Of a stretch of 63,929 bases of DNA, positions 15,159-63,800 are shown piece by piece. The translations under genes and the position numbers were made by a program. The stretch is taken from positions 1-63,929 of the forward strand of contig LPNZ01009407.1 in NCBI GenBank assembly GCA_001655205.1, written 5' to 3'. The DNA comes from Lenisia limosa (Eukaryota > Protista > Breviatea). The notes below the pieces were generated by a model that saw only the letters and a program-made list of their open reading frames with translations, had not been told where the DNA came from and did no database searches. Positions within the stretch are counted from its first letter, which is position 1. Every line of letters begins with the position of its first letter.

Positions 15159-18100
15159 CTAAAGGACCAGTTTATCCTTAGTGGAGCCACGAGGTTCAAT
15201 TGCAAGAGACATGCTATAGGCTTTCTTTTCATCAATGACAGACGCCTCTGTGATATACTTCCAAATCTCGGATTTTAACTAAGGTATAAAAAACAGACAG
15301 GAGATCCAAACCTCTGGTAATTCCTTTAAGTTATATGCAGTTTGCTGATACTGCTGAAGATCAAGAATGACATTCATTTCCATAACTCTCTAAAAAGTGA
15401 TTTTTGATGAGGAAACACAAAAAACTTTTGACAAAAAAATATACTCTATCGATATATATACTATCACAAGCCATCGACACATATCTTGATTTCTGATATA
15501 CTATCATATCAATATTAATTATGTACATGTACGATAGGCCTACTTTTGTGAAATTAATGAGCTTGCCAATTTGATCCGGGTTTCCATCACCAATAAAAGT
15601 TAAATCAGAAAGGAAAACACCTAGACAATCAGTAAACGCCCGGTACGCTCCAACATTACCGATATAAGGGATACAGGGCGGGGAAATGGACTTGAGGTTG
15701 CTTCTGTAATTCTTGTATGACATTTCCGCACTCATAAGAACTTCTTGGCTTGCCAAAGTCTAGCATTAACAATAAAAATCAACATCCATGAGTTTTTTAT
15801 TGACATCCTTACGTGTATGTTTCAATCTGAGTGTTGCTGAGTTGTTCAAACCAGCTAATACTGAAGTTAAAGCAGAATAGTTTTGAAGAGATTGGAATTC
15901 CTAAAAAATAAATTAAGGCACAAGCAATCTTACAATAGCTAATTTGATAAACCACTCCATTCGCTTTACTCTGGCCTTCAGACCCTCAACTCGAACCATG
16001 TCATGCGTAATCCTGAAGTTAGAAATAAAGGACTACCAATTAGAGAGAATATTAAAAGTATCAATAAAACCAAGAACGTTAGGAGAGCGGTGCTGGGTTT
16101 TTGGCTTTGACCAGGCTTGGTTCAACAATTCAGGTGCCTGGAACGTAAACATAATACACTTCCCTTACTCTGATACATGAATAACGCTCAAAGTCAGCAA
16201 AGGTAATTTGTCTTGCAACTTCAATAGGATCAATATCATAAACGGTCTGAACAGCACTTTTTGGAATCTTGAAGAATAAAGAGAAGATTGCCCAACAATT
16301 GGTTCAGGAGGATCCTCGTTGAAATGCCGCTGTCTGCCAGTTGTAGCCACGGCCTTCTTCTTGTCAATGGTTTTAAGAAGCTGTGTGGACAAAGACGACA
16401 TGCTTTGGGAAAAATCTCCTTGAATAAACTTAACAAGCCTCTCCTAATAGATCAGTGCAAAGATGTACGCTCTACAAACTTGAAGTGGTTCATCAAAGTC
16501 GGCCCAATAGTCTGAAATCCACATTTTAAGCACGTTTCCAACCCGAAGATTAACAATCGATTTAGCTTTCGAGTAATCCTGCACAATAAGACAAAGATTG
16601 GAGGCTAACCGCATCACCCATGTCTAAGGCGCGCGGGACACAGGAGCGCTCAATTAGTTTCGTCAGGAGAACATTGGGAGAGGTGAACGATTGATAAGTC
16701 AAGAGGAAGGTTTTTTGGAATGTCATATCTACAGAGTAAACCACACATAGCAACACTTCATAATATTGTGAGGATAACCATGATAATAAGTTGGATTTTT
16801 GGCAAACCATGATTGTCGGTTGAAGTAACAGTTCTGATCAAATAGTTGAGCGATCCAGCTTCAATGAACTGTTTGCCGTCCTTGGAGCCAAAGAGGACAT
16901 TTGAAGTACTAGAGAGTAATATATTATGTTGAGCGGACTTACCTATCTTCTGGTTCATCCCAGAAGGGAATATCCTGAGCAACACCATCTAAAATGAATC
17001 AAAAAAAAAAAANNNNNNNNNNNNNNNNNNNNNNNNNNNNNNNNNNNNNNNNNNNNNNNNNNNNNNNNNNNNNNNNNNNNNNNNNATGAATAAGTAACAT
17101 AACTCAAATTCGACCAACCTCCATTGTCATCATCAGTGACATCCACGTTTGACGCAAGCACACAACCCTAATAAATCAGCTTATTGTAATATTGACTATT
17201 ATAATCTGATATAAACAATTTACTCTAAATCTTTTCACAAAAGATGCCTACAAATAAAAGATACCACCTTGATTTATCTCACTTTTCATTGAAAAAAAGG
17301 TCGGAAATGTTAAGTGTTATGTAGTACTGTACTTTAAAACTTTTATATGATCTACTCTGTATTATCACAAAATTAACAACCCAACATACGTGTCTTTGTC
17401 TCAGGTAGAGAGTTGATTGCCTTGGAATACCTGCTCCTTCGATTCCCTCCACAATTGGAGAGCTGCCAAGAAGTTCTTCTCCATACGACTCATCAGGATC
17501 TTCGATCGCGGCCGACAACGAAAAGGGGGCTTCGGGGTCCTTCAACGGGCTTAGAGACCATTGGTGGGGGTGATTCAATTCTAACAATTAGACCGGAGGC
17601 TTCCTTACTGCTATTAAAATGGGAGCAAATTTGGGCTAAAATGGAGGCGACTGGCCCATCCACATCAACTTCAATTTCGTCTTCAAGAGATAATGCAATA
17701 TCAAAAGCTTGGAGGCGGGGTGTTAAGGTAACAAGATCCTTGAGACATAAAAAAACAAAAAAAAACCATAACTTACCCCATGTTTCAAATTATAGTCACA
17801 AATTGTGTTAGTAGGGTCTTCAAAATATATTGAAACTGGTTTCTGAACAATAAGAATCCTCGAAGTTTGGACAAACCTTCTTGCCGACCACATCTTGAGA
17901 GGTCATGATTGTGTAATTATCAGGTGATTTGATATTCCCCTAAAGATTAAAAGAGAAACTAAGAAGAGGCCATACTTCTCCCATCGAAACGAGGGTGTCA
18001 AGCAGCTCCTGTACTGTAGCCCGTTTTCTGACTGACAGAGACCTTTTCTCGGGGAATCCGGGAACAATGCAAAACAGGTTCACTTCCAATTCTCTAAACT

Positions 18101-22200: not shown

Positions 22201-24421
22201 AATGAAGCTCTAATCTGACACCTCTAGACTCGCGGCCCCTCTGTGACCTACCGCGGCGAGAGGAAGGATCGTGGGTTGGGTGAAAGGCTTCACTTCTGTC
22301 CAAAAAAGAATTTTATTGGTCTTTTGGACCAAAGTGAATGAAAGTGGCGGCATCGACTACATTTATCTTGGTACATTTATACGCTGTTCTTTGACCAATA
22401 ACATCCCAGCCACTTTGTTTTCTTACCTTTCCAGTTTACATAACGAAATCTTGGACTTCTGCAATTACATTCAACCCACACCGGCCGAGCTTTGGATGCG
22501 CTCTGATGTGCTGAACCAGCTTCAACAAACAATCAATCAGCTTTGGCCAAGTGCAACGGTTTGGTCCCTTCGCTCTCTTTCCCTCTTCTTCTCACAATAT
22601 TTCTTTCTCGTTCTCTGATCTCTTTATCGCGTATAGTGTTTCTCCTTGTTGTCTCTCTCATTCCTTGTGTTCTTGCTTTGTTCTTTCAGGATGAATTCTG
22701 GTGTATCCNNNNNNNNNNNNNNNNNNNNNNNNNNNNNNNNNNNNNNNNNNNNNNNNNNNNNNNNNNNNNNNNNNNNNNNNNNNNNNNNNNNNNNNNNNNG
22801 TATCATTTTGTTTAGTCAATCCACAATCCAATACTATGGTTATTTACATATTTTATGCTCCGTAGATGGAGGTGTTCGGCTCCGTGCTTACCAGGCTTGT
22901 CTTACCAAAGTCGGACATTGATGTGGTTGTCTTCGGAGTTAACAACAATATTGTTTCGGCCTTACACAGGTAAGAAAACAACTTTGTGAAGGCTTTTCGT
23001 TCCAATTTTTATGAATCAATCATACATGAATCTTAATGAATGTAGACTTGAAGAGGTTCTTTTGGAACGCGTAGCGTCTAGTGTACAAGTCATTCCCAAA
23101 GCCAAGGTCCCCATCCTCAAATACGTTGATAGCTTTTCTGGGGTGAGCATTTTGATCTATGAGTGACCAATTCTGATGAAAATAGTCAATCCCTTTTTGT
23201 TTCTCTTGAAACACATCCTTTGACCACTCAGTGCAATGTTGACGTCTCTTTTGACATCCCATACGGCCCTCGGAACACAAGGCATCTCAACAGTTTCCTC
23301 GACACTAGTCCAGCTCTCCGTCCACTCACGTGAGAGGCGTTATCATATGACCTGCTGTAGTTTTATCTCTCATTTCCAGATTATCCAAAACGGTTAATAT
23401 TTATCAGGGGGTACCGAAGTATTAAGTCCTTTTCATTTCCAAGTGCTCACTGGAAACACACCATTAGCTCACCGTTCAGATTGACGATCAAGTTCCTTCT
23501 CAGCCAGCAAAACTATAACGAGCCTTATTCCGGCGGCCTGGGCTCCTATGCATTGGTGTTAATGGTCATTTCACATCTCCAAGTGGGTAGCGTTTGGACT
23601 GATTGATCCATGAATAGATATGTAGTTGTGTTCTGATCCAAATAATGGGTCTTTTCACTTGTATTCACGAGACACTAAGCACTGTACTTTAAAATTTCAT
23701 ATATTGTTCATTTCTTAGAACTATCCATGTAACCGAAATGCGGTTCCCGTCTGCGTGCCAAAAACGCCCGGTGTTGATTTGGGGGACTTGTTGATCTCCT
23801 TCTTCTACGTCTACGGAGAGCACTTTGACTACACGGTTGGAGAGGGTACTATCAAGATTTCGTTGTCTTTTCGTCTTTATTACTATTTGCATTTCCATGA
23901 CACAGATAGATACATTCTTCACTTCTGTACAGTGTTGTTATTTATTGCCCAGAATTCTGCAATCAGTATTCTTCAGCATGGTACCTACTTCCCCAAAACC
24001 AGTCGTAATTGGTATGACAGCAAACACCCCAAAAAAAATTGCTTTTCAACAATAATGCAGTCTCAAACATACATCTGCATATTACCAACGGCAGTTCTCT
24101 CAAGTAGATCGGATCTTTAACCAGAGTTCCCGTTTACTTTCTCAGGTTTGACAGCAGCAATCCATCAGCGTTGGCGGTGGAAGACCCCCTGCTCCCGAAA
24201 AATGACGTGGCGAAAGCAGCGTTTTTAATTTCACATATCCGAAATCTCTTCCGTGAGGCCTACAATCGATTGACTGGAAATCGACCGGTCAGGTCGCCAA
24301 ATACCTGTGGGTACTTGCCTTTTATGGTGATTCACGTTGTTTGAACAACTGCTAAATGTTTTTGATCATTTTTACTCTTTTTTTTAGAAACCCAAGCTCT
24401 TCCACCAGGTCAAAGTGGTGA
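19256..24421 (+). CDS. TENT4: Non-canonical poly(A) polymerase, TENT4/PAPD5/Trf4 family, with a long Pro/Gln/His-rich N-terminal region
   Basis: LHNEILDFCNYIQPTPAE; FGSVLTRLVLPKSDIDVVVFG (GS + DxD); AKVPILKYVD; NVDVSFD; NEPYSGGLGSYAL; LAVEDPLLPKNDVAK. The core (about 22430-24421) is secure. Attachment of the low-complexity exons at 19256-21880 crosses an N-gap and is inferred. Confidence 0.85.
20591..20700. repeat. Intronic minisatellite, 30-bp unit, about 3.7 copies
   Basis: tgttattagcttgctttggtggttgattct and variants start at 20591, 20621, 20651 and 20681 (last one partial). Confidence 0.95.
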
Positions 24422-31816: not shown

Positions 31817-34800
31817 CTAAGAAGGGGGTGCGGGGGCGGTCTGCTTGCCTAATCGGGCAACTTCGGCGCCAAGCTCATCAACCGTTGTTAGCAGGGTCAT
31901 GTTTTTGAGAAGGATCTCTTCGAACATTGCCTGCAGAAATGAACAGTCACCAAAGCCTCCTCTCAATACCTGGTACTGAGGAGGCATTTCCGGGTGTTCT
32001 TGGGGGGCCGTCATTAGAGTTAGGAATCCTTTTCGTTTTGTTTGCTTGGATAGGGGGGCTGAAAGCGCTCCCATTTTCTCCTGGGAAGTGAAGTTAGTCA
32101 TATGATGAGCCCATTGGTAATATACGCTAGGTATGACAACTACTGCTTCATAAGTATTGTATTTTTTTAAAAAAAAAACTGAGCTAGTAAAAAAATCAGC
32201 CCTCCCAACCCTTTGGATGTAATGTGATATAATAGTCTTCTTGTCACATAGGTCTTCCTGGAGGGACTGGTTTGAAGACTCCAAAAAGATGTTCTAAAAG
32301 GTCAAGCAAAAAGAAGAGGTATTTGATTGGGAGTGGAGAGATATCGTATCAGGAAAACATCATTATTGTAATGGACGCAGAGAGAAGACCAGCTCAAACC
32401 TTTTCCTCCAGTCGCCACTTTTCGCTTTGTAGCGATGCAACACGGTCAGTAAGACCGTTAACTTCGGACTGCAGTTGTGTCGGTGACGGCATCGACTGAG
32501 CAGATGAGAATGCAGAACCGTGAAACAAGTCTTGCTCCAAATGGTCGTAAAAAGAGTTAGCATCCCGATAATTGCTCGATTCATGTTGATATAATAAGGA
32601 TATCAGAGTACATACTCATAGAAATACTTTTCTTTTATTTGGAAAGCACACTTGTGAGATGAGGAAAAGACAATTGCACCAACATCGGAACCAAGGTGGA
32701 ACACTCTTGGAAACTCCATAAGTATTTCAGACATTGTATGCTGGGGAGGCACACAGAAAGCTGTATGCACAGAGTTGTAAGGCAAATGATTGGGTGAATC
32801 CAATGTCTCTTAAAGCGTGATGGTGTGACGGCTTCGGCCAAATACAACCTTTTTTTTCTTTTCTCATTGCCATATATTTCAGTTATTGGACCCTTACCGG
32901 ATCTGATGGGGTTACTGGGGTAGTAGCGATGGGGGATTGGACCTGGGTTGTGAGTATATCCAAAAACAATCAGGTGAAGTATGCTGTTTGAAGTGGACTA
33001 TATTTCTTGAGAATAAAATACAATCTAGAATAGCTATCGATATGAGACACAAAAATAAAACAGATACAACTATGCCAAAAGTGACAAAATAAAAAAGCCA
33101 AAATTAACATCAGGCCAAAGCCATCCACACCAGCATNNNNNNNNNNNNNNNNNNNNNNNNNNNNNNNNNNNNNNNNNNNNNNNNNNNNNNNNNNNNNNNN
33201 NNNNNNNNNNNNNNNNNNNNNNNNNNNNNNNNNNNNNNNNNNNNNNNNNNNNNNNNNNNNNNNNNNNNNNNNNNNNGATCATCAGAAGGGCCTTGCGCTG
33301 GGCAACCTTGAACTCTTCCTCTCTCTTCTTCATCATTTCTTTGGCATTATTCTGGGTGTCTTCAATCTGGCGATCAGCATCTGCGGCCTTTTCTTCAGCC
33401 TGTTTTCTCAGATTATTGGCTTCTTCAAGATGAACCTCCGCTGCCTCCTGAGCTCCAAGGGCAGCACTTGCCTTTTGCTGCTCCTCCACGACATGGGCCT
33501 TGGTCTGCTCCAACATTGCCATGACCTCTGCGTTGCGCGTGGCCTCATCACGCATTCCAGCCTCCAATTCATCACCGCGCGCCTGCTCCTTCTGAATTAG
33601 ACCGCTCTGCTCATCCAACTTGGCCTGAATTGCGGCTAAACTGGCTGCATGGTTTTTCGCGGACGCTGCAATTGAAGACACATGACTCTGTTGGAGATCT
33701 TCAAGCTCCTTCTGCACGGTTTTCACTTCGTTCTTCATTGAGTTGACTGCATTATCCCTTTCCTCTACCGCCTCACGCAGGTCCTTAACCAGTCCCGTAG
33801 CTTTCTTTAGGTCCAACAACGCAGATTCCTTTTCCGCTTTCATTGGAGTCAACCTGGTCACTTCATCACTCAAACTCTCAACCTGTCCTAATAACTTCGT
33901 TTCCCGAGTTATTGCCTTCTGCTTCAACTTCTCAAGAGCCTGTTTGGCCTGTTCATCACGCTCCTTGAACTCCTCTTGCTCCGCCTGGATTGCAATTGCC
34001 GCAGCTGCTGAAGACGACTCATTTTCCTCCACCATTTGCTTGACTATGCCCTCCAGCTCGCCAATTCTCACTTTGGCTTCCTTCAACTTCTCCTTGAGAC
34101 TTGAAACCTTGTTCTTTGCTGCCGTGGCGCCAGTAGAGAACTCTTCTGCCATTGAGGACACTTCAGACTCCTTCTGAGTCAAGGCTTTTGCCATATCGTC
34201 GCGCTCCTTCTCCGCAGTAGCCAACTTGTCCTTCATTGTTACAATCATCTCAGCGCTAGACTGAGCGTCGGACTGCGCTTGTCTTAATTTGGTCCGCTGT
34301 TCACCTTCACACAGCGCCGCGGCCTCAAGCTCGGCATTGGCAGCCTCAACCCGGGCAATGTACACCCGTGACTTTTCCATTTCGGCCTTGAGGTCGGTTG
34401 TGAGTTGACTGTTACGATCTGAAAGATCCAAGTCTTTCTTCCTCAGTTCCTTCGCTTCATTCTGAGGAGTGACTTACAAAAAACCACTATCTACCAGACC
34501 TATCGTGTCATATCAAAAAACACTATCATACATATGATAGTATGATGCAGAGTAAGATTTCACATACTCTACATACTCTACATAAACTATTTGATATTTT
34601 TGCGTTGATTTGATAAGCCGCATACAAGTGATTCCTCGAGAGCTTCTTTGGTCGCCGAAATGTCATTTGTTGTGTCCTTTTGTTCACTCTGAATTTTATA
34701 AGTCCAAGACTTTCCTCAATTGAAATGAACAAAAATAATCATTGGAAATCCTGATTCCTATTATTACGATCTTAACCAACCATTACAGTGGATAACTTCT

Positions 34801-37800
34801 CTTCACAGCTGCCAAGCTGCGATTTTAACAAAGCTATCTCCTCCTTCTGTTCCCTCATCTTCGACATTTCTCCCTCATTGGCGGCCTAGAGAGTCAATCT
34901 TCAAATTTTCCACAAAAAATCTCGATAAAGTGTTCATAAATAGAGACTACCTGTATATTATTGATACGAAAAGAGTATCGTTTGTTATGCAAAGGGATTT
35001 AGTTTGGATACCAACGTATTTTAAGTAATTTAAATGGAAAATACACGATATTCCACAATCATGTTCAACAAATTCTACAGATAATAATCCTCTCCAACCT
35101 CAATTTTGGCCTCAAGATTTGAAATTGTGTCTTTCAAGTACGTAACTTGGGAATTGTGCTCAGATTCTGACTGCGCGATAGACTGTTTCAAAGACTCAAT
35201 TTCTGACGTAGCCGCTGACTTTTCTTCTTCTCTTGCTGACTTCTCAAAGCTATACTTCTCCATCACTTCCTCTAAACTCTTTTCACAAACAGTCTTTTCC
35301 TTCTTCAGCTTCTTCATTTCTTTGTTCACTTTCTTTGTTTCTTCAACCTTCTTCTTCACTTCATCCTTAAGCGTAAGATTCTCTTCTTGGACCTCTCCTA
35401 GCCTTTCCTCTTTCCTCTTTAACTTTTCCGAAAGCTCCAAAAATCTTGTCTTCAAATCTACCTGTGCTTCTTGCGCACTGGTCAGATCACAGGATAATTG
35501 CTTTCTTTCAACTTCCATTACCTCTTCCAATCTTGACACAACCTTTTCTCTGTCGACATTTGCTGCTGCCTTCTGCGCTTCAAGCGCCTGCTCCATTTCA
35601 TGTTGAATGGACTCGTTTCGACTTTCTAAACTCTCATTCAACGAGACTAGCTCCGCAACCCTGCTTCTCAGCTCCTCCGCCTCCGCACTCCTCTCCATAC
35701 TCCCTGCTTTGGCGGCTTTCAATTCGGACTCCAGCGCGGCCCGGGCCTCCGCTGCCGCCGCCTCGTCATTATCAGCCGCCTCTACACTGGTCAACTTCGC
35801 CGTTAGGTCCTCAACTTGAGCCACCAGAATTGCGTTGCGCGTGTCAGAAGTGGCGTGCTTCTCCGTCAATGCCGATACGTTGGCGTTGAGCGTCTCTTCG
35901 TTGCGTCGACTCACTTCCAACTGCGATCTTAGATCGTCCAATGTGTCTTTGGCGTCTTTTAGTGCTCCTTGAACGTCCGTGAGCTCATTGCCAGATACTG
36001 TACTTGCTACTGACGCCGAATGCAAGGATTGTTTTAAGGTAGTGATTTCACCAGAAAGGGCCTCCTTTTCGCTCTGAAGTGAGACAAACATCTGGTGTTG
36101 CTCTTGCCTTGATAGTTCAGCTTGGGTATGTTTCTTCTCTAAAGAGGCGAACGCAACTTCATGCTCCTTTCTAAGCTTCACGATTTCTGCCATTGAAGAT
36201 CCGGTGGCGGTCTATAACGAGTCAAATAAATAGTTCGTGGTGTGTAAAATTCAGGACCATATCATTTGTGTGTGATCCATACCTCAAGTTCGTTTCTGAG
36301 GTCTTCAAGCTCCTTCAAATGTTGTTCAGCCTAGTTCATCGTCAATAATACTGAAAATAGCACAGTTTACAGTCTTGCCTCATAAAGAATTACTGGGTGT
36401 CTAAATATGAACCAAGTTTAGATATCAAATGCTCATAAAATTACATTCTTGGGTTAATGTTAACGATCAAACCCTCGATTAAGTAGCAATCTCATTATTT
36501 TTACCATAATATATAGTACTAGTATATGATATCTCAAAATGTATCTTCATACCTCTTGTGATTTGGCAGCTATCACCGCTCTCAACTCTTCCTTCGTCTC
36601 CTCAAGGTTCTTTCTTGCTTCATCAACATCCTTTTTCAACTGACTGACTTCCTCTTCAACAAGCTTGCTTGCTAAATTGAATGATGTGAAGAAGGATTTT
36701 TTCAAAGCAATTCAAATCCTTCGATTCAGCCCCTCTTACCATTTAAATCCTGTTGGCATTTCAATAGCTTCGCTTCAGCTTCATCCTTGGAACTCAAAAT
36801 CAAATCTATTTCAACCTAGACTCATAAGGAGAATCAAACCAACTATCCACACGGATATACACACGATATTTCAACAGCGCAAAATATTTAGAGGTGAGAA
36901 ATAAAACAAGGTTATATGGCCAAAGCCGCACACCATCACGCTTATAAGAGATATTGGATTATATAGTATTATATGTTACGCAATTTCACGTAATAATAAG
37001 ATATCATATGATATACTATACATCATTTATAAAAAAGTTATATTTCGCTATCTGAAATTTTCCAGCAAGTTTCCTGTTATATATTATCCTGTCACGTCTC
37101 TAAACCCAACAAACATTTGAACCTCCACCCCCGCCACAGGCCTTGAGGTTTTCGATTTCCTCCGCTTGGGCCTGATGGTTAGGTCAAGTGCTTCGAGTGG
37201 ACAAGAATACGACTTCTAGTTTTACCACACATAACACTTTTTATAAAAAATCCTACAATCAGTTGTTTCTCGACTTTCATTGAGTTTGCAGAGGCAACGG
37301 TCACATTTTGTCGTAAAGCAGCCGTCTAAATAGTTGAATCTGCATACAATGTAATGGTAATGTATCCCAATAGCCTTTGAAAAGAAGTTACAACCAAACC
37401 AACCAACCATTTGCTGGTGTTCTTCCCGTTCATTCCTAATGATTGTTTTGAGACTCTCTGTCTCCTTTAGTGCTTCAGCAAGACTTGTCTTTTGCTTGGA
37501 CTTGCCAATAACCTCTGAAATGGTTTAACACGTGGATGATAGGCAACTGGTGCAGAAAAGTTTCACAAAATATAGGTTGCAGGTCGTGGTTAACACAAAT
37601 CTATGTACATGGAATAGATCTGACAAAAAATGAATTAAAAACCCACTTTGAGCCTTCTCAAGTTCTTTAGATGAAGCTTCATATGACCGTTTGAAGCGAT
37701 CAAGTTCTGGGAATGTTACGACAGGGATTAATCAGCAGTCGCTTCCACCCACCACAATCAATAATAATATAAATATTGTGACACGATAGGGTGACAAAAT

Positions 37801-56400: not shown

Positions 56401-58272
56401 TGCTATCACGTTCTTTATTTATGCACAATTTCATACTATTGTTATTTAATCAGATGATATTTAAGCTTTGGTCTGATTATTGTATTCGTGGTCCACACCT
56501 TAACCCATCAGATACACAGTTAGTTGAAGTACTGGAGGCAATTGCAGTTTCTTGCATGAGTCCTTTATCCGTTCTGGCGCTTCTTTATGAGGTAAGAGTG
56601 TCATTATTTAGCTGAGTATTGCATTGATTTGTTTCTTCATGCACACTTAATGGAGTTTTTTTGTCTTTTTTCACCCCCCCCCCCNNNNNNNNNNNNNNNN
56701 NNNNNNNNNNNNNNNNNNNNNNNNNNNNNNNNNNNNNNNNNNNNNNNNNNNNNNNNNNNNNNNNNNNNNNNNNNNNNNNNNNNNNNNCCTGCAGACTCTA
56801 TCGGATCGGTTGGTTATTAATGAGAGATTCATTGATATTATTTTGAGCAAGATAGGAGTCGGCTAATTTTGAACCGCAAGAAAAAACCTGAAATATTAAA
56901 AGTCTAAGGAGATTAAATAAGACATAGGGGTACTATAAAGCAGAATGTACGATACTCCTACCCCACTCCTACCTCCCCCTGAAAGTAATCGTTGTAGACT
57001 TTCAGCCCCTGGTCTGTCACCACCCCTCAAGAGCTGCCTACCAAAACTCCTACCCTGTGTTCTTCAACATTGCGTATGGATGGGGTCTGCATTTCTTTGG
57101 GACTGGATTTTGATCTTACTGTTTGCGTATGTTATAAAACTATTCCCTGTTGTTTTCGTGGAGCGTGATAAAGACTGGAGGGAATTTTACCGTACTCTGA
57201 AACTTCAACCAGCCCAATCAAAACGCCTGATGTTTCAGCCCGATGCCTCTGGAGTTTCCTCCCTGATGGACCAAATTTCAACACTGATCCTGAGATGCGT
57301 TTTGGACGACAGCTGCGTGCTCTGGATTCGTATGATTTGGGCTTCTCTATTGGTCATAGTCTCCTGTTTTGATAAACGTGTGGTCTTCGTGTAACTGTTC
57401 TAGACGATGTGGACGAGGATCACCCCACTTCACAGGCTCTCAAGACGGGATTGACAGCATTGAGCTCCCCTCTTGTCTGCCAGAGCTTTTTGGACACGTA
57501 TCATAATGATTGGTATGGGTGTGTTGTACTACAAAAGTGCATCTTATTACTGAACTGATTTCCGAGGCAGTTTAGAGTTATGAAGATCTGTGACAACTAT
57601 TGTATTTTGACACCTTTTGGAATGATTTTGCATTTTTTCCTTTTCCGGAATGGGCATTTTGACCCTTTTAGGAAAGTGTCGACTACTCTTCGTTCTTTGA
57701 TAGGCAAATTCCTTGGTGAACCTTCAGTAGGGTTAAAGCAGAGCATGACTTGACGATAACTTCCTTTTTAGGAAGGTGAAATTGTGACAAACTCTGGACT
57801 ATTACCAACTGAAGATAATGTTCTGGTAAGCTGAATCGGCACGGCATTGTATCTTCCAACCACTTGGGTAATAACTTGTTGACTTTTTTTGGAAAGATGA
57901 ATCACCAAATCGCAAAAATCAAACAGAGTCGTATTTTACTTTGAGTCCTTTGATATTCATTCACGGTCACAGGCGGCTTGCTACGTATTACGCCATTTGT
58001 CGCGCGAGGAAGCATTTGGCGTTGCCCAGTACCTCCTAAAATACCGGCAGTGGTCAAGCATCAGGCCGTTATGGGACGGGGGTGATGATTTAGGTGTGTG
58101 GTGTAATGTGTCCCATTGATTTTGATATAAGAACATTGGCTTTCAAATCAGTCAAAAATGATGTGAGCTTTTGTGGGATAGGATTTCTGCTGTGTTCTTT
58201 TCACTGTCTTCAGAGTACCCAGCAACGGCCGTGGAATCTGGTTTGGCGTCTGTGTTTCAATTTTGTATGTAA
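50432..58272 (+). CDS. Large multi-exon protein of unknown function (Leu-rich, probably alpha-helical solenoid)
   Basis: A chain of plus-strand exons with GT/AG borders, including a long exon at about 53851-54290 (TENNVATPSLLALAV..WNRALCLAEPCLEDNWIKKFLPEKLL). Others read DKDWREFYRTLKLQPAQSKRL and RSQAACYVLRHLSREEAFGVAQYLLKY. No family motif recognised; it could be more than one gene. Confidence 0.55.
56165..56305. repeat. Intronic purine-rich tandem repeat (10-bp gaagggtgaa units, partly in 23-bp higher-order units)
   Basis: Directly visible: gggctgaaagaagggtgaagaag repeated, followed by a run of gaagggtgaa units. Confidence 0.95.
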
Positions 58273-58492
58273 AGTAGGTATTATTTTGTTGGTTTCTTTG
58301 GTTTTGAAAAGCTGTTTCTTATTATGGTGTATGTTTCGTGTTATTTATTGAGCCAATGGCAAACTTCCCAATTGAATCAGATATCTTAAATAGTAGAGAA
58401 AAATATCCAATACAATCATTCATAGCGTGCTCCACATCTGACCACACCATATGTGGAAGATACTATGACAAAATGAATCCAAAGAAAAGGCC

Positions 58493-60491
58493 TCAGGGTC
58501 TTCGCCAAACCAGCAGTTCTTGATTAGACTGCAAGGACCCAACAACAACCGAGCTGATAAGTGGGCACTCCTGCATGATCAGACACGCCAGTTCATCGCC
58601 AAGATCCTCATTGACATCGGCTTGGTTAATGACAACTATCCGACGGTTGGGGCCAGCGTTTTGGAAAGCTCCGTTTTTATGATTGATTAGACTCGGGATG
58701 AGGTTAGTGCTGACGTTATCATCCAGTTCCGCTCCGGTAATACTACAGAACTGCTCCGGTCTAAAAACAGTGTCTTTGATGGGCTTGCCAAAAGCGGAAA
58801 TGCCAATGACGGAAATAACTGTTGTCGTTGCGGAGGGGATAACGGGCTCGGAGGCACCTGGGGCTTTCAGGGGAAGGCACCTTGCACCATCAGCCTCAAC
58901 GATAACGGACATCTTCGTCGCTTCATACCTACCTTGTTAGATGACCATTATGAGAAGAACTGCAGCTTAAAGGGGGGGAGGGAGCACGTTACCATACCAT
59001 ACATAATACATTCAAAGAATGGCACCCACAAACACAGAGTTCAGCCACGTCGGGTTGATTCCCTTGACTTTTGCGTCTTGCACGCTGCCGCCAAGAACAA
59101 CCAAGTGCCTGGTATTGGGAAGGTATTTGGCCACCGAAGGAACTGATGGATTAGGCGGTAACTAGAAAGAGGCATTAAGCACCGATTAGGATTCACTACG
59201 GTCTCAACAAGATTGGTTTTCTTGAAAAATCTGATAATTATCTTGCCATATTGCTTTTTGCGACCAGACTGAAGACCAGAGTGTTAAGACATTTTTTTCT
59301 TTGAAACTGGTTCTCAATAAACACTGATAGTAAGAAGTTTCTGTCTCCAAACTAAGTACCCAGCAACATCTTGAATAATATCATGTTACCGAAATGTTTG
59401 AAATTTGATAGATGAATAATACTGGAGCATCCTACCAACTTTGACATGGTTTCGCTGGAGCAGGGTACACATCCAAGTCCTCCTCTGCTACTGGTTTGTC
59501 ACTTTCAATCTGTGTTTGTCAGTTAGCAAGTCCAATACAGCAAAGGTCCAAATATTAAAGCTGAATTATCAACGGTAACCAAAATACTCCCATTTTACCT
59601 ATTCCAACGGGGGGGGGGGTCAACACAAGCAACAGAACCAACCTACCGATTTCACCGTTTCAATTGCCACATGTTCAGTTTTGGGAATCAGAGTCTCAGC
59701 AGGAGGGAAAACAGGGTCCTCTTGAGAGTTATATTAACAGTCAACCCTTGGCCAAATACATAGTATATATGCATATATATTATATCTATATAGTATATGA
59801 TACAGTTTCTAGCTAGTATATATAATATTGAACCCTTGTTCTATGATATCACATTTTACCAGGGAATAAATATTGATTGATATTGGTCGAGTGGCAAAAG
59901 GGGAAGGGCTACGGCAAAATAGAAAATGTACACTATTAGATAGTATATTATATACTATAGTCCTTTGAATATTTTCAAAAAAAATCAAATCAAATTTCTA
60001 CAACAGTATGCCACATTCCTCCTTACCAGAAGGCAGCCTGATTTTGCATGTTGACGCTGCGACTGCACCCGGGGTTTCCTCTTCATTCTATTTCGTAAAT
60101 GCCACTATGTGCGCCATGATTATTTGACATCTGTCGCAACGTATCAATTTATATTGATAAATGTTATTTGGGTATCATACTCCAAATTACTATACAAGAA
60201 GGTGCTCTAGCATCTCTATTATACCCACCACCGACAAACGTATTTCCCCACTCACCAGTTCCATAAGGAGTCTGAACATAGCGGTTGTCTTCCCTCCGCC
60301 TCCAACGATACTCACCATTTCATGGCGATTCAAATCGAGTGCTTTGCCTTCGGGTGAGAATCGTGATATCGTGTTGAATGGAAGGGTGGTTTGTGTTGGG
60401 ATTTCAAGAAAAAAATGCTTCAGAAGAAATTGAAAATCGCTTCACGAGGCTTACATAAATGATGCTCGCAGCTGACTGCCCATGAAGACAT
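58493..60491 (-). CDS. yqeC: YqeC-family protein (putative selenium-dependent molybdenum hydroxylase accessory protein), spliced eukaryotic gene
   Basis: Exon 60491-60455 (MSSWAVSCEHHL) joins exon 60347-60256 (CKALDLNRHEMVSIVGGGGKTTAMFRLLMEL) and exon 60087-60027 (NEEETPGAVAASTCKIRLPS). A later exon reads LVVLGGSVQDAKVKGINPTWLNSVF. The last exon reads SVIVEADGARCLPLKAPGASEPVIPSATTTVISVIGISAFGKPI..VFRPEQF..LINHKNGAFQNA..RIVVINQAD. All hallmark YqeC blocks appear in the correct order. Confidence 0.88.
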
Positions 60492-60870
60492 GATCAGATG
60501 AACAGAACCTCGAAGTTACCCAAAGAAACAACAGAGCAGCAACAGTTAAAATACTATCAATGTATTTATAAATGTGTAAGAGAGGGCGAGCAGCGAGCAA
60601 GCAGCGAGATTGGGAGAGCCAAGAGGCAAGCGAGTAAAATTGTACCAGTGTGCATAAAACTTAGCAAAAAAATAATAGCCAAAAACATAATTTGAAGCCA
60701 GTTTTAAGCGTTTATTTACCGTGTTCATAGTGATAGCACAAGGGTATCTCAGAAAAGACCTTTTGTTCAAGTTTTAGTGTAAATCTAGATGCCTTCAGAG
60801 GCATAGAAGTGGTTTCTTAAATTGTTTTAGGGTTATCTGTGGATAATCAAGCCGGGAAATCGGCTCCACG

Positions 60871-63800
60871 ATGAACTCCGAAGAATTCGACATTCGCAGG
60901 GCGGTTTCTGACGATGCCCAGAATCTCCGCTCCCTCATCTACGCTGAGGCTTCTTTGTTGAAGTCCAGATTTGGTGAATTTGATATCTCGAAGCTTATGT
61001 AGGTTTCTTCCCCCAATTTATTGTGTAGTGAGGTGAGTTCTCTGTCGATCGTTGCTACAAAGCCGGAAGGCGAAGCTTCTGTTATCCTCTGCCTTGATAA
61101 TGGTAGGATTTTTCAAATAGTGTGTATTGAAGAGTTTTTGGCACAAATGTAGCAAAGATGGCTCCATTCGTCACTGTGAAACAACAGGATATTTTTTGAC
61201 TGTTTTCCAAATTATTTTCTTAGAGCCTCCTACCTTCAGTGGATCCGAGACTCCTCTCAATGCTGTTGTGAGCTGGGGGTTTGCCTTCTTGTCTAAATAT
61301 TTTGTCTGTTTGCCTTTATCACCTTGTTCAACTGTACATTATCATCACTGTTCTGCTTCATTGTTGGAGAGTAGGGATTGTATGCCTTGCAGTTCTTAAC
61401 TTGGAGTGTAATTAATTTGATGGACGTTGTATAACTTCCATTTTGATTGATTAAGATAAACTGCTATTATTTCACATTTCTTAGTTCCTCACAATTTATT
61501 CGTCCATTTCCATTTTGCTTTATCAGATCACCCCCCTTACACCACTAATTCCTCAGAACTGGCCGAAGTGGATGGCGGAAAACTGCCCCAATCTTGATGC
61601 AGACGTAAGAAGGGGTGAAGGCTCTCCTAATTCACATTGTCACATTGTCCCTTAAACCTGCCCTAGGCCAAAAATCATGATTGGATTTCGCTCCGTCTCA
61701 CCCACTAACTCCTTTTTTTTTACTAAGAGTTAAGGATCGCCAGGGATCCCACTTATATAAGCATAGTCCGCTCGCAACCCCTAAACCCTTTGACCAATAG
61801 TGTTACCACTTTGCTTCTCAGTAGTATTTCACTCCGCACCCCCAGGAAATCAATACCCTCTTTGTGACATTCTTCGGGGGTGACCATGTTGTTGCTCATG
61901 ACGCCACATTTGAAATGCTTGCGTCCGCGTTCCACACGTCAGAGCTGACCGACACTGTGTTGCTGCTGCTTCCCGAGGTCGGATCTTTGGTTTTGATCCG
62001 TTACCTTGGTTATGGTGAAATCTCATTCCTCTATAGCGTATATATATATATATATATATATTGAACAAGGTTCTCTGAATCACCACGAAAAATAACACAA
62101 AATTAAGTTCACCTCTTTAGGATGTTCTATCATTTTCGCCCTTCAGGGAGATCTTAGATCTGGTAGCAGAGTTCGATGGATTCAGTATTATGGCCGCCCA
62201 TCGCGCCAAGTTTGCGCCACCCCTTGTCATCCGACGCGCAATGGTGGAGGTATGGGGGGGGGGTATTGTTTTTACCTTATTTATTATGTATTTTTCATTG
62301 TTATAATATGTCATAATAATAAGTCATTATCTTCCAGGATCACGACGATCTGACGCCGGTGTTCGACAAGTCATCAGAGGTCATGAGCAGCCGCTACGGC
62401 TCCTATTTCCTTGCCGACCTTATTGCTGCCCAGTCCCCTGAAACGCCGGCTCTTGTCGCTGAGGTTGGTAGTGGTGATAGATAGTATACAAGGTCAATTT
62501 CGGGAAATACATGAAGCTTGGTTGAAAATTGGGTACAGTTTGTGGTTCCCTAAGGAGGTAGTACAACAGTGCGGAAAAGAGGAAGAAGGCAAGATTGCCG
62601 AAGTTGTCCGTGTATCAGGGGTATCAAGGACATGTCAAGGATATATCAGTTTATCAAGGATATCTCATCAATGATTACGCTATTTTCACCCACTATTTTA
62701 CTTCAAACTGCCTATTTTTACACACTAAACCACCACCCTGTATTTTCACACAAATTGCCCTTATTTCACGTACACAGAACAATAATGGCCGAAGCCTCGT
62801 ATGATACGAGTATTCCCAAAATTTGCCTTCTTTGACACCTTTCAGAAAGACGGACGCGCGGCTGGCTTGATGGTTTTGAGCAGCGAGGTGGAAGTTGACC
62901 ATCTGTTTGAAAGCTTCGAGTTTGATTCCTTTGAAGACCTCCAATTCTGTGAGGGGGGTTTTAGCTGAGTCGAAACTGGTGCTCTTGTTCTCAGTGTAAG
63001 TCTTGTTTTTTTTTTTATCTATCTTGGATCATCATAAACATCTTTGTTGCCTTCCCTAAACTAATTGACATTACATCTTCAAAATCGAAATACTTCTGTT
63101 CTTTTGTTGGCAACCGTAACGCCGTAGCCAAGGAAAAGGCCTTCTGTATCAGTCTACACTGCATGGACGAGGAGGTGGAGGCGAGCCTCAGATCGTCAGA
63201 TCTCCTCACGGCGGCGTTTGACCTTTATCCGACCAAGCAATACTGCCTCTGCACCATTCCCAATTCCGCACCTGTGGGGTGTATAAATGAATAAATCTGC
63301 ATTTCCCCACTCTTCTTCAGAAGCGTAAATGCAATCGTCTAACCACCCCAGGTCTTCTCTCTCCTCGACCAATTCACCCCGATTTCGCCGAAACACCCCT
63401 CCTCCGCCACCGCAGCCCTCTACATTCTTGATAGGGCCTCTCTCAACCCAAAGGGTGTACAAGGTCGGGTCGGGCTCCGAGTTTTCCGTTTGGAACTGTT
63501 TTCTTGGGTGCATATCATATTAATAGTGTATCCCCCCATCCTCTCACCCCTCTCCTTCCAGTTATCCCCATCCTCTCACCCCTCTCCCTCCAGTTATCCC
63601 GCTGACACGAGAGGACCTTGCNNNNNNNNNNNNNNNNNNNNNNNNNNNNNNNNNNNNNNNNNNNNNNNNNNNNNNNTTCCCGCCGACGAGGAAGGCCAGA
63701 TCCTAACAGCACTCAAGACCACACTCGATATTCGTGCTGGTGTGCGGGGTGGGCATCTTTGTTGTAGTAAAGGCTCTATTGAAACAAGGACCACTGGATC

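Follow-up and report, generated by a model that had tools for sequence, protein, structure and literature searches.

The analyzed window is a 63,929-nt stretch of the Lenisia limosa contig LPNZ01009407.1 (assembly GCA_001655205.1), positions 1 to 63,929. On its minus strand, at positions 58493 to 60491, it encodes an intron-split member of the YqeC family (TIGR03172; Pfam ID PF19842), which in bacteria is a marker of the selenium-cofactor trait of selenium-dependent molybdenum hydroxylases. The start ATG is found at 60491-60489, 9 codons after an in-frame stop, and the TGA stop codon at 58495-58493. Splicing by hand yields two in-frame models with GT-AG boundaries at every junction: model A, with 6 exons, 5 introns, and a product of 280 aa, and model B, with 7 exons, 6 introns, and a product of 297 aa.

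Exon 1 (60455 to 60491; 37 nt, ending in phase 1) encodes MSSWAVSCEHHL and is followed by the donor GTAAGC. For intron 1 (60348 to 60454; 107 nt, GT..AG), the acceptor used is the only one that keeps the frame into the P-loop exon. Exon 2 (60256 to 60347) encodes the N-terminal helix and the P-loop (KALDLNRHEMVSIVGGGGKTT...). This piece alone scores 28.7 bits against PF19842 (cutoff, 27.6) and 25.8 bits against TIGR03172, and tblastn matches it to residues 8 to 46 of bacterial YqeC. It is followed by intron 2 (60088 to 60255; 168 nt, GTGAGT..AG), exon 3 (60027 to 60087), intron 3 (59721 to 60026; 306 nt, 29% GC, with AT-rich simple sequence), and exon 4 (59647 to 59720), which encodes DPVFPPAETLIPKTEHVAIETVKS. 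A candidate exon 5 (59440 to 59509; 70 nt), present only in model B, adds a 17-residue acidic loop insert that bacterial YqeC lacks. The exon with the VKGINPTWL motif (59026 to 59161) has its acceptor at 59161 in model A or at 59142 in model B. The last intron (58933 to 59025; 93 nt, GT..AG) contains CTAAC 6 nt before the AG. The last exon (58493 to 58932; 440 nt including TGA) alone scores 119.1 bits against TIGR03172 (cutoff, 73.05; E value, 2e-34) and 67.2 bits against PF19842. The introns contain 36% GC versus 50% in the exons, and the GC3 of the gene is 0.51, within the range of 0.36 to 0.60 seen in other coding pieces of the window.

The start codon of this gene is separated by a spacer of about 380 bp (60492 to 60870), probably a shared bidirectional promoter region, from the divergent start codon of CFAP61, a eukaryote-only ciliary protein whose gene is split by introns. 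The 5' part of CFAP61 occupies positions 60871 to 62965 of the plus strand and gives CFAP61_N hits of 42.1 bits at 62323-62481 and 24.2 bits at 62786-62965. The scaffold has 15 N gaps, but no N run lies between 56787 and 63622. RasGEF and Cid1-type poly(A) polymerase are also encoded in the window, and the organism is clearly a flagellated, intron-rich eukaryote. Pfam scans of 28 larger open reading frames in the window were mostly blank, and Rfam and tRNA scans of the window found nothing.

Comparison of 31-mers with sequencing runs indicates that the gene is expressed and spliced, although this evidence consists of k-mer shares only and not of reads across junctions. A poly(A) RNA run (X1), from a library labeled metatranscriptomic, holds 0.40 of the sampled 31-mers of positions 58400 to 60600, whereas a fully spliced mRNA predicts 0.30 to 0.41. 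The same run holds only 0.07 of the words of the 485-nt intron region at 59162-59646, whereas a second run (X2) holds 1.00 of both. For this intron region, the expected share is 0.088 if candidate exon 5 is spliced in and 0 if it is not. This difference rests on about 3 sampled words, so that the support for model B is weak.

The spliced protein scores 226.7 bits (model A) or 225.2 bits (model B) against a profile built from 128 full-length bacterial YqeC sequences and covers profile positions 7 to 257, a collinear match to both the N-terminal P-loop half and the C-terminal half, and its core has the same length as that of bacterial YqeC. All the motifs listed in the preliminary description are present, namely, KALDL..EMVSIVGGGGKTT, AASTCK, VKGINPTWL, VIVEADGARCLPLKAPGASEPVIP, VIGISAFGKP, FRPEQF, and VINQAD, which is far beyond chance. 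Of the 33 columns conserved at 75% or more in the 128 bacterial sequences, 29 are kept, including every invariant E, D, G, K, E, and P. The P-loop, GxGGK(T/S)(T/S) in the family, reads VGGGGKTT, its commonest form, and the EADG(A/S)x, LKAP..EPVIP, RPE, and N(K/Q)xD motifs, carried by the last exon, are likewise identical to the commonest forms. The TTTT(K/H) block that follows the second strand is degenerate and reads A-S-T-C-K, encoded by exon 3. Its first three positions fall within family variation, but the fourth is Thr in 126 and Ser in 2 of the 128 bacterial sequences and Cys here. This block is a conserved motif rather than the curated membership criterion, but its divergence could mean altered or weakened function. 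The preliminary description of this gene, as an intron-containing YqeC next to CFAP61, is confirmed.

An exhaustive search of 1.84 billion cluster representatives returned 3,609 hits, none of them above 53% identity, and every one whose genomic context was checked is bacterial. Identity to the best bacterial members is 34 to 45%. This search found neither the protein itself nor any close relative, so that no sister eukaryote or donor could be named, and a look-up of contigs encoding the 139-aa open reading frame of the last exon found none on record. This open reading frame is present in a metagenome-derived protein atlas, in which the nearest clusters are 100% bacterial. In two trees, the protein sits inside bacterial diversity on a long terminal branch (1.25 to 1.3 substitutions per site) with no supported sister. 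The best groupings, with unlabeled metagenomic sequences and Thermodesulfobacteriota-like proteins from metagenome-assembled genomes, have SH-aLRT values of 84 and 90, and no donor is claimed. The nearest sequences in the trees come from bacterial operon-type contigs.

The closest bacterial relatives are encoded in operons with YqeB (TIGR03309; 354 and 311 bits), MocA/YgfJ, XdhC-family, MoaB-like, and molybdenum transport genes. Of the 10 long hits that were scanned, 9 are fusions of YqeC with a MobA-like NTP-transferase domain, in both orders, and structure-based hits in the protein atlas show the same fusion. In contrast to these operons, the L. limosa gene is monocistronic, and none of the genes for YqeB, SelD, MocA, XdhC, or a molybdenum hydroxylase of the xanthine dehydrogenase family lies in the window. 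The candidate client enzymes of this family are xanthine dehydrogenase, purine hydroxylase, nicotinate dehydrogenase, and DOPDH.

An AlphaFold2 model of the bacterial relative P0040 (pLDDT, 92.9) matches SRP54/FtsY, MeaB/MMAA, MinD/ParA, and NifH in Foldseek searches, with a probability of 1.0 and E values down to 3e-5, and a search of the PDB with the family profile also finds FtsY and ArsA. These comparisons, made with the bacterial relative and the family profile and not with the spliced protist protein itself, point to the SIMIBI class of P-loop NTPases. Motifs of the corresponding types in the L. limosa protein are GGGGKTT (G1), EADGAR (G3-like), and NQAD (G4-like). The similarity of the P0040 model to MeaB/MMAA and other SIMIBI G-protein metallochaperones (identity of about 12 to 15%; TM-scores of about 0.40 to 0.44) is low and supports the fold class only. 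These proteins share the logic of nucleotide-gated cofactor delivery to a target enzyme but serve a different cofactor. MobB, the P-loop GTP-binding partner of the molybdenum cofactor guanylyltransferase MobA, is a small SIMIBI-type protein that accompanies a MobA-like nucleotidyltransferase in molybdenum cofactor dinucleotide formation and is dispensable in standard assays. YqeC gives only a marginal hit to MobB (E value of 0.15 with the P-loop exon) and has an extra C-terminal domain. The analogy is a functional inference rather than family membership, but the bacterial fusions point to a MobB-like role beside MocA, a hypothesis that can be tested in bacteria as well.

Taken together, these data are best explained by a genuine, transcribed nuclear gene for a complete YqeC-family protein, probably a GTPase, which was acquired from a bacterium long enough ago to gain 5 or 6 spliceosomal introns, host-like base composition, and a probable shared promoter region with CFAP61. 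We assign this reading, together with the role suggested below, a probability of about 0.6. Family membership, gene structure, eukaryotic context, presence in spliced form in poly(A) RNA, and bacterial affinity follow directly from the analysis, whereas location, function, and any use of selenium are inferred. The protein has no N-terminal extension relative to the bacterial ones and most likely works in the cytosol. Its likely role, by inference, is that of a nucleotide-dependent accessory protein or chaperone in maturation of the molybdenum cofactor of a bacterial-type hydroxylase of the xanthine dehydrogenase family. It would act with a MocA-type cytidylyltransferase, XdhC, and YqeB, with SelD as the selenium donor, in parallel with MobB and MobA or MeaB and its mutase. 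The likely metabolic purpose would be anaerobic purine or urate breakdown. A deletion of yqeC in Clostridioides difficile had no growth phenotype on purines, unlike deletions of yqeB and selD (PMC11448449).

The interpretation offered in the preliminary description is thus partly supported: lateral transfer followed by intron gain fits the data, whereas a labile-selenium molybdenum hydroxylase pathway in this organism remains a hypothesis. Its claim that no eukaryote with this trait has been described is weakened, as YqeB-family genes, a marker of the same bacterial selenium-cofactor trait, have been reported in the nuclear genome of the anaerobic flagellate Spironucleus salmonicida and read as possible non-selenocysteine selenium use (Xu et al. 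2014, PMC3916229). That report did not include YqeC, XdhC, or purine pathway genes, and S. salmonicida genes are almost intron free, in contrast to the heavily intronized gene described here. No paper describing a eukaryotic YqeC was found in the literature searched.

Among the alternatives, the one that survives best, although it appears unlikely, is that YqeC has been repurposed or works without selenium, helping to assemble or insert a sulfur-type (MCD or MPT) molybdenum cofactor into a xanthine dehydrogenase- or aldehyde oxidoreductase-type enzyme, or serving another cofactor. In that case, the organism would have no labile-selenium trait. The strongest bacterial linkage is to MocA-type cytidylyltransferases and XdhC-family maturation factors of aldehyde oxidoreductases, which concern the molybdenum cofactor and not selenium chemistry, and both the silent C. 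difficile deletion and the diverged TTTT block are consistent with this view. However, YqeC of the closest bacterial relatives is adjacent to YqeB, the better-supported selenium marker. It is still less likely that the gene is a decaying relic, transcribed and spliced but no longer useful. The substitution of a 98%-conserved Thr, the long terminal branch, and the fact that no close relative was found in any other organism might suggest this, but the frame stays open across 6 or 7 exons, 29 of the 33 conserved columns are intact (including the P-loop, EADG, K, EP..P, and N), the splice sites are canonical, and the gene is represented in poly(A) RNA. Bacterial contamination or an assembly chimera, which the evidently mixed sample, the N gaps of the scaffold, and the presence of the last-exon open reading frame in a metagenome-derived atlas might suggest, is rejected because the coding sequence is interrupted five or six times by GT-AG introns that carry in-frame stops, the RNA run lacks the intron words, no gap separates the gene from CFAP61, no bacterial protein is more than 53% identical, and the composition is host-like.

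A more far-reaching possibility, which is tentative and somewhat less likely than not, is that this anaerobic flagellate has imported the whole bacterial module for selenium-dependent purine/urate fermentation. The module would comprise the cofactor maturation set of YqeB, YqeC, XdhC, and SelD and enzymes of the recently described 2,8-dioxopurine pathway (SsnA, YgeW, YgeY, and others), all intronized and scattered over the genome. This would make it the first eukaryote with the "third" selenium utilization trait, and one that gains ATP from urate.

The labile-selenium cofactor of molybdenum hydroxylases is the least understood way in which life uses selenium and has been treated as a prokaryotic trait. 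Its markers YqeB and YqeC also travel with the newly defined anaerobic urate (2,8-dioxopurine) pathway of gut bacteria. A fully domesticated YqeC in a eukaryote would extend this trait across domains, especially if genes for YqeB, XdhC, SelD, YgeW, SsnA, and YgeY prove to be present in the same genome, and would add a new energy and nitrogen source to the metabolism of anaerobic protists. It also provides an independent handle on the unknown function of YqeC, as a gene that is kept and expressed outside an operon after long divergence is likely to be needed.

The YqeC gene is encoded on the minus strand. Six-frame translation of 58400-60700 shows YqeC-like peptides spread over different frames and separated by stop-rich stretches. 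Single pieces are sufficient to identify the family. The terminal open stretch (58493-58912) scores 119.1 bits against TIGR03172, "selenium cofactor biosynthesis protein YqeC" (curated cut-off 73.05, E value 2e-34), and 67.2 bits against the Pfam YqeC family (PF19842; cut-off 27.6). The P-loop piece (60190-60333) scores 28.7 bits against PF19842 and 25.8 bits against TIGR03172. No other P-loop family comes close, the best alternatives being VirC1 and MobB at E values of about 0.1. The preliminary description of an intron-containing YqeC gene at this locus is confirmed.

With a tblastn comparison to bacterial YqeC as a guide and direct reading of the minus strand, two in-frame gene models were obtained, with GT-AG boundaries at every junction. 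Both share the exons at 60491-60455, 60347-60256, 60087-60027, 59720-59647, and 58932-58493. Model A (280 aa) joins 59647 directly to an exon at 59161-59026, whereas model B (297 aa) adds a 70-nt exon at 59509-59440 and uses the acceptor at 59142. The ATG at 60491 is the first one after an in-frame stop located nine codons upstream. Against a profile built from 128 full-length bacterial YqeC sequences, model A scores 226.7 bits and model B scores 225.2 bits, and both cover profile positions 7 to 257 in a single domain. The N terminus has no extension over the bacterial proteins, so no targeting peptide is evident. The introns are 93 to 485 nt long and have a GC content of 36%, as opposed to 50% in the exons. 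Intron 3 (59721-60026; 29% GC) contains an AT-rich stretch full of TATA-type simple sequence, especially at about 59740-59960, which includes 59755-59792. Two introns, at 58933-59025 and 59510-59646, carry a CTAAC branch-point-like motif 6 to 12 nt before the acceptor AG (TCTAACAAG; GCTAACTGACAAACACAG), which resembles the short branch-point-to-acceptor spacing described for some metamonad introns.

Expression and splicing are supported indirectly, by the k-mer content of two sequencing runs of the same study. A polyA "metatranscriptomic" RNA run (X1) holds 0.40 of the sampled 31-mers of 58400-60600, whereas a second run (X2) holds 1.00. In the 485-nt stretch at 59162-59646 (intron 4 of model A), X2 again holds 1.00, but X1 holds only 0.07. 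A fully spliced mRNA is expected to give 0.30 to 0.41 for the whole stretch, depending on the length of the untranslated regions, and, for the intron stretch, 0 under model A and 0.088 under model B. Thus, the RNA holds the exons and not the introns, which argues against DNA carry-over. The small residue fits the extra exon of model B and mildly favors that model, although it rests on only about three words.

The start codon of the gene is separated by only about 380 bp (60492-60870) from that of a divergent plus-strand gene, whose later exons match CFAP61_N (42.1 and 24.2 bits). CFAP61 is a ciliary protein found only in eukaryotes, and in this head-to-head arrangement a laterally acquired gene appears to share a promoter region with a ciliary gene. 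Other eukaryote-type genes on the scaffold, at 15361-15756 (minus strand) and 22271-24120 (plus strand), are a RasGEF domain exon and a Cid1-family poly(A) polymerase (PAP_assoc plus a weak hit to the central palm domain). Two unusually long open stretches at 33070-34431 and 35075-36193, both on the minus strand (453 and 372 aa), match no Pfam family apart from a weak coiled-coil-like SHE3 hit. One of them is interrupted by an N gap at 33137-33276, and they may belong to the type of the "unknown helical gene" mentioned in the preliminary description. The scaffold is a gapped short-read draft with 15 N runs (for example, 56685-56787 and 63622-63676), so that gene models crossing the gaps are unreliable. 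However, no gap lies between 56787 and 63622, and YqeC and CFAP61 therefore sit on uninterrupted sequence. The GC3 of YqeC (0.51) is within the range of the other coding pieces (0.36 to 0.60). Contamination or chimerism is therefore very unlikely.

A word-indexed search of 5.8 billion proteins found only bacterial-type YqeC, at 35 to 47% identity to the last exon. An exhaustive phmmer search of 1.84 billion cluster representatives returned 3,609 hits, none with an E value below 1e-30 and none exceeding 53% identity. The ESM Atlas contains the 139-aa open reading frame of the last exon (58496-58912, minus strand) as a protein of its own, possibly from this same sample, and its nearest clusters are all 100% Bacteria. 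The DNA of this organism has therefore probably been processed as a metagenome with prokaryotic gene calling, which would hide the true spliced gene. Among the GTDB species genomes, the best matches come from Dehalococcoidia, Anaerolineae, Spirochaetota, Desulfovibrionales, and Clostridia metagenome-assembled genomes (MAGs), at 33 to 51% identity over the best matched segment. In a tree with 69 taxon-labelled genome sequences, the protist protein sits on a long branch (1.3) in an unresolved group with Dehalococcoidia, Nitrospinota, Atribacterota, and a spirochaete. With 151 bacterial sequences, it groups weakly (SH-aLRT 84, then 90) with unlabelled metagenomic proteins and Thermodesulfobacteriota-type MAG proteins, and the contigs of those neighbors are ordinary bacterial operons. 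Thus, the origin is bacterial, with an unresolved donor, and the transfer is not recent. No second eukaryote with a close copy was found in these searches.

The closest bacterial relatives keep the classical neighborhood. In a Dehalococcoidia MAG, the gene order is MocA-like, Mo-type ABC transporter, YqeB (TIGR03309, 354 bits), methyltransferase, YqeC, and XdhC-family maturation factor. In a second contig, the order is MoaB/Mog-like, YqeC, MocA/YgfJ (178 bits), and YqeB (311 bits). Of the 10 long hits that were scanned, 9 (P0071, P0132, P0059, P0047, P0052, P0093, P0081, P0100, and P0186) are fusions of YqeC with a MobA-like (MocA-type) nucleotidyltransferase domain, in either order. One protein (P0176) is fused to a HAD hydrolase instead. 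Structure-based Atlas hits show the same fusion families. These fusions suggest a MobB-like role for YqeC that is not discussed in the literature consulted.

No YqeC structure has been solved. The best PDB matches of the family profile are FtsY and ArsA, and an AlphaFold model of the bacterial relative P0040 (pLDDT 92.9) matches SRP54/FtsY, MeaB/MMAA, MinD/ParA/Soj, and NifH. These are SIMIBI-class NTPases, many of which gate cofactor or cargo delivery. The family carries the motifs GxGGKT(T/S), EADG(A/S)x, which resembles the SRP G3 motif DTAGR, and N(K/Q)xD/E, a G4-like motif that suggests, by inference, guanine nucleotides. Of the 33 columns conserved at 75% or more in the 128 bacterial YqeC sequences, the protist protein keeps 29, including every invariant residue. 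All four deviations lie in the "V..TTTT" block, encoded in exon 3 (60027-60087), which reads AVAASTC. The last Thr of this near-invariant block is T in 126 and S in 2 of the 128 sequences, and it is Cys here. This change, which might be neutral, adaptive, or a sign of relaxed constraint, is the main caveat on function.

The literature agrees that the role of YqeC is accessory and undefined. YqeB and YqeC are computational markers of the Se-cofactor trait. In Clostridioides difficile, selD and yqeB deletions impair growth on xanthine and urate, but a yqeC deletion shows no phenotype (PMC11448449). XDH and DOPDH both need SelD (10.1101/2025.04.24.650524). The statement in the preliminary description that no eukaryote is known with this trait needs qualifying. 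The Spironucleus salmonicida genome paper (PMC3916229) reported homologs of a gene shared by "orphan SelD" bacteria, which its supplementary table names as the YqeB family, and its authors proposed selenium use beyond selenocysteine. In the literature searched, no paper reports a eukaryotic YqeC, and none reports the urate-pathway genes in a protist.

The interpretation offered in the preliminary description, an old lateral acquisition that might serve a labile-selenium pathway, is only partly supported. The transfer and domestication of the gene are well supported. Nothing in this window bears on partners, and selenium dependence and a full purine pathway remain a tentative proposition. YqeB, XdhC, SelD, YedF/DsrE, YgeW, SsnA, and YgeY together make up most of the gene set of the E. 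coli ygeW-ygfK region and of the 2,8-dioxopurine pathway, and the pathway-level claim, if verified, would be more novel than the gene itself. The family assignment, the gene model, the eukaryotic surroundings, the exon-biased RNA content, and the bacterial affinity come directly from the sequence and k-mer comparisons, whereas the nucleotide preference, the function of the protein, and any use of selenium are inferred. As far as the literature searched shows, the gene is the first eukaryotic member of an already described family, acquired by a well-known process, lateral transfer into an anaerobic protist. A role in the maturation of the molybdenum-hydroxylase cofactor is likely (probability of about 0.6), with YqeC being read as the MobB-like or MeaB-like nucleotide-dependent helper of the MocA, XdhC, and YqeB cofactor line for XDH-family hydroxylases.
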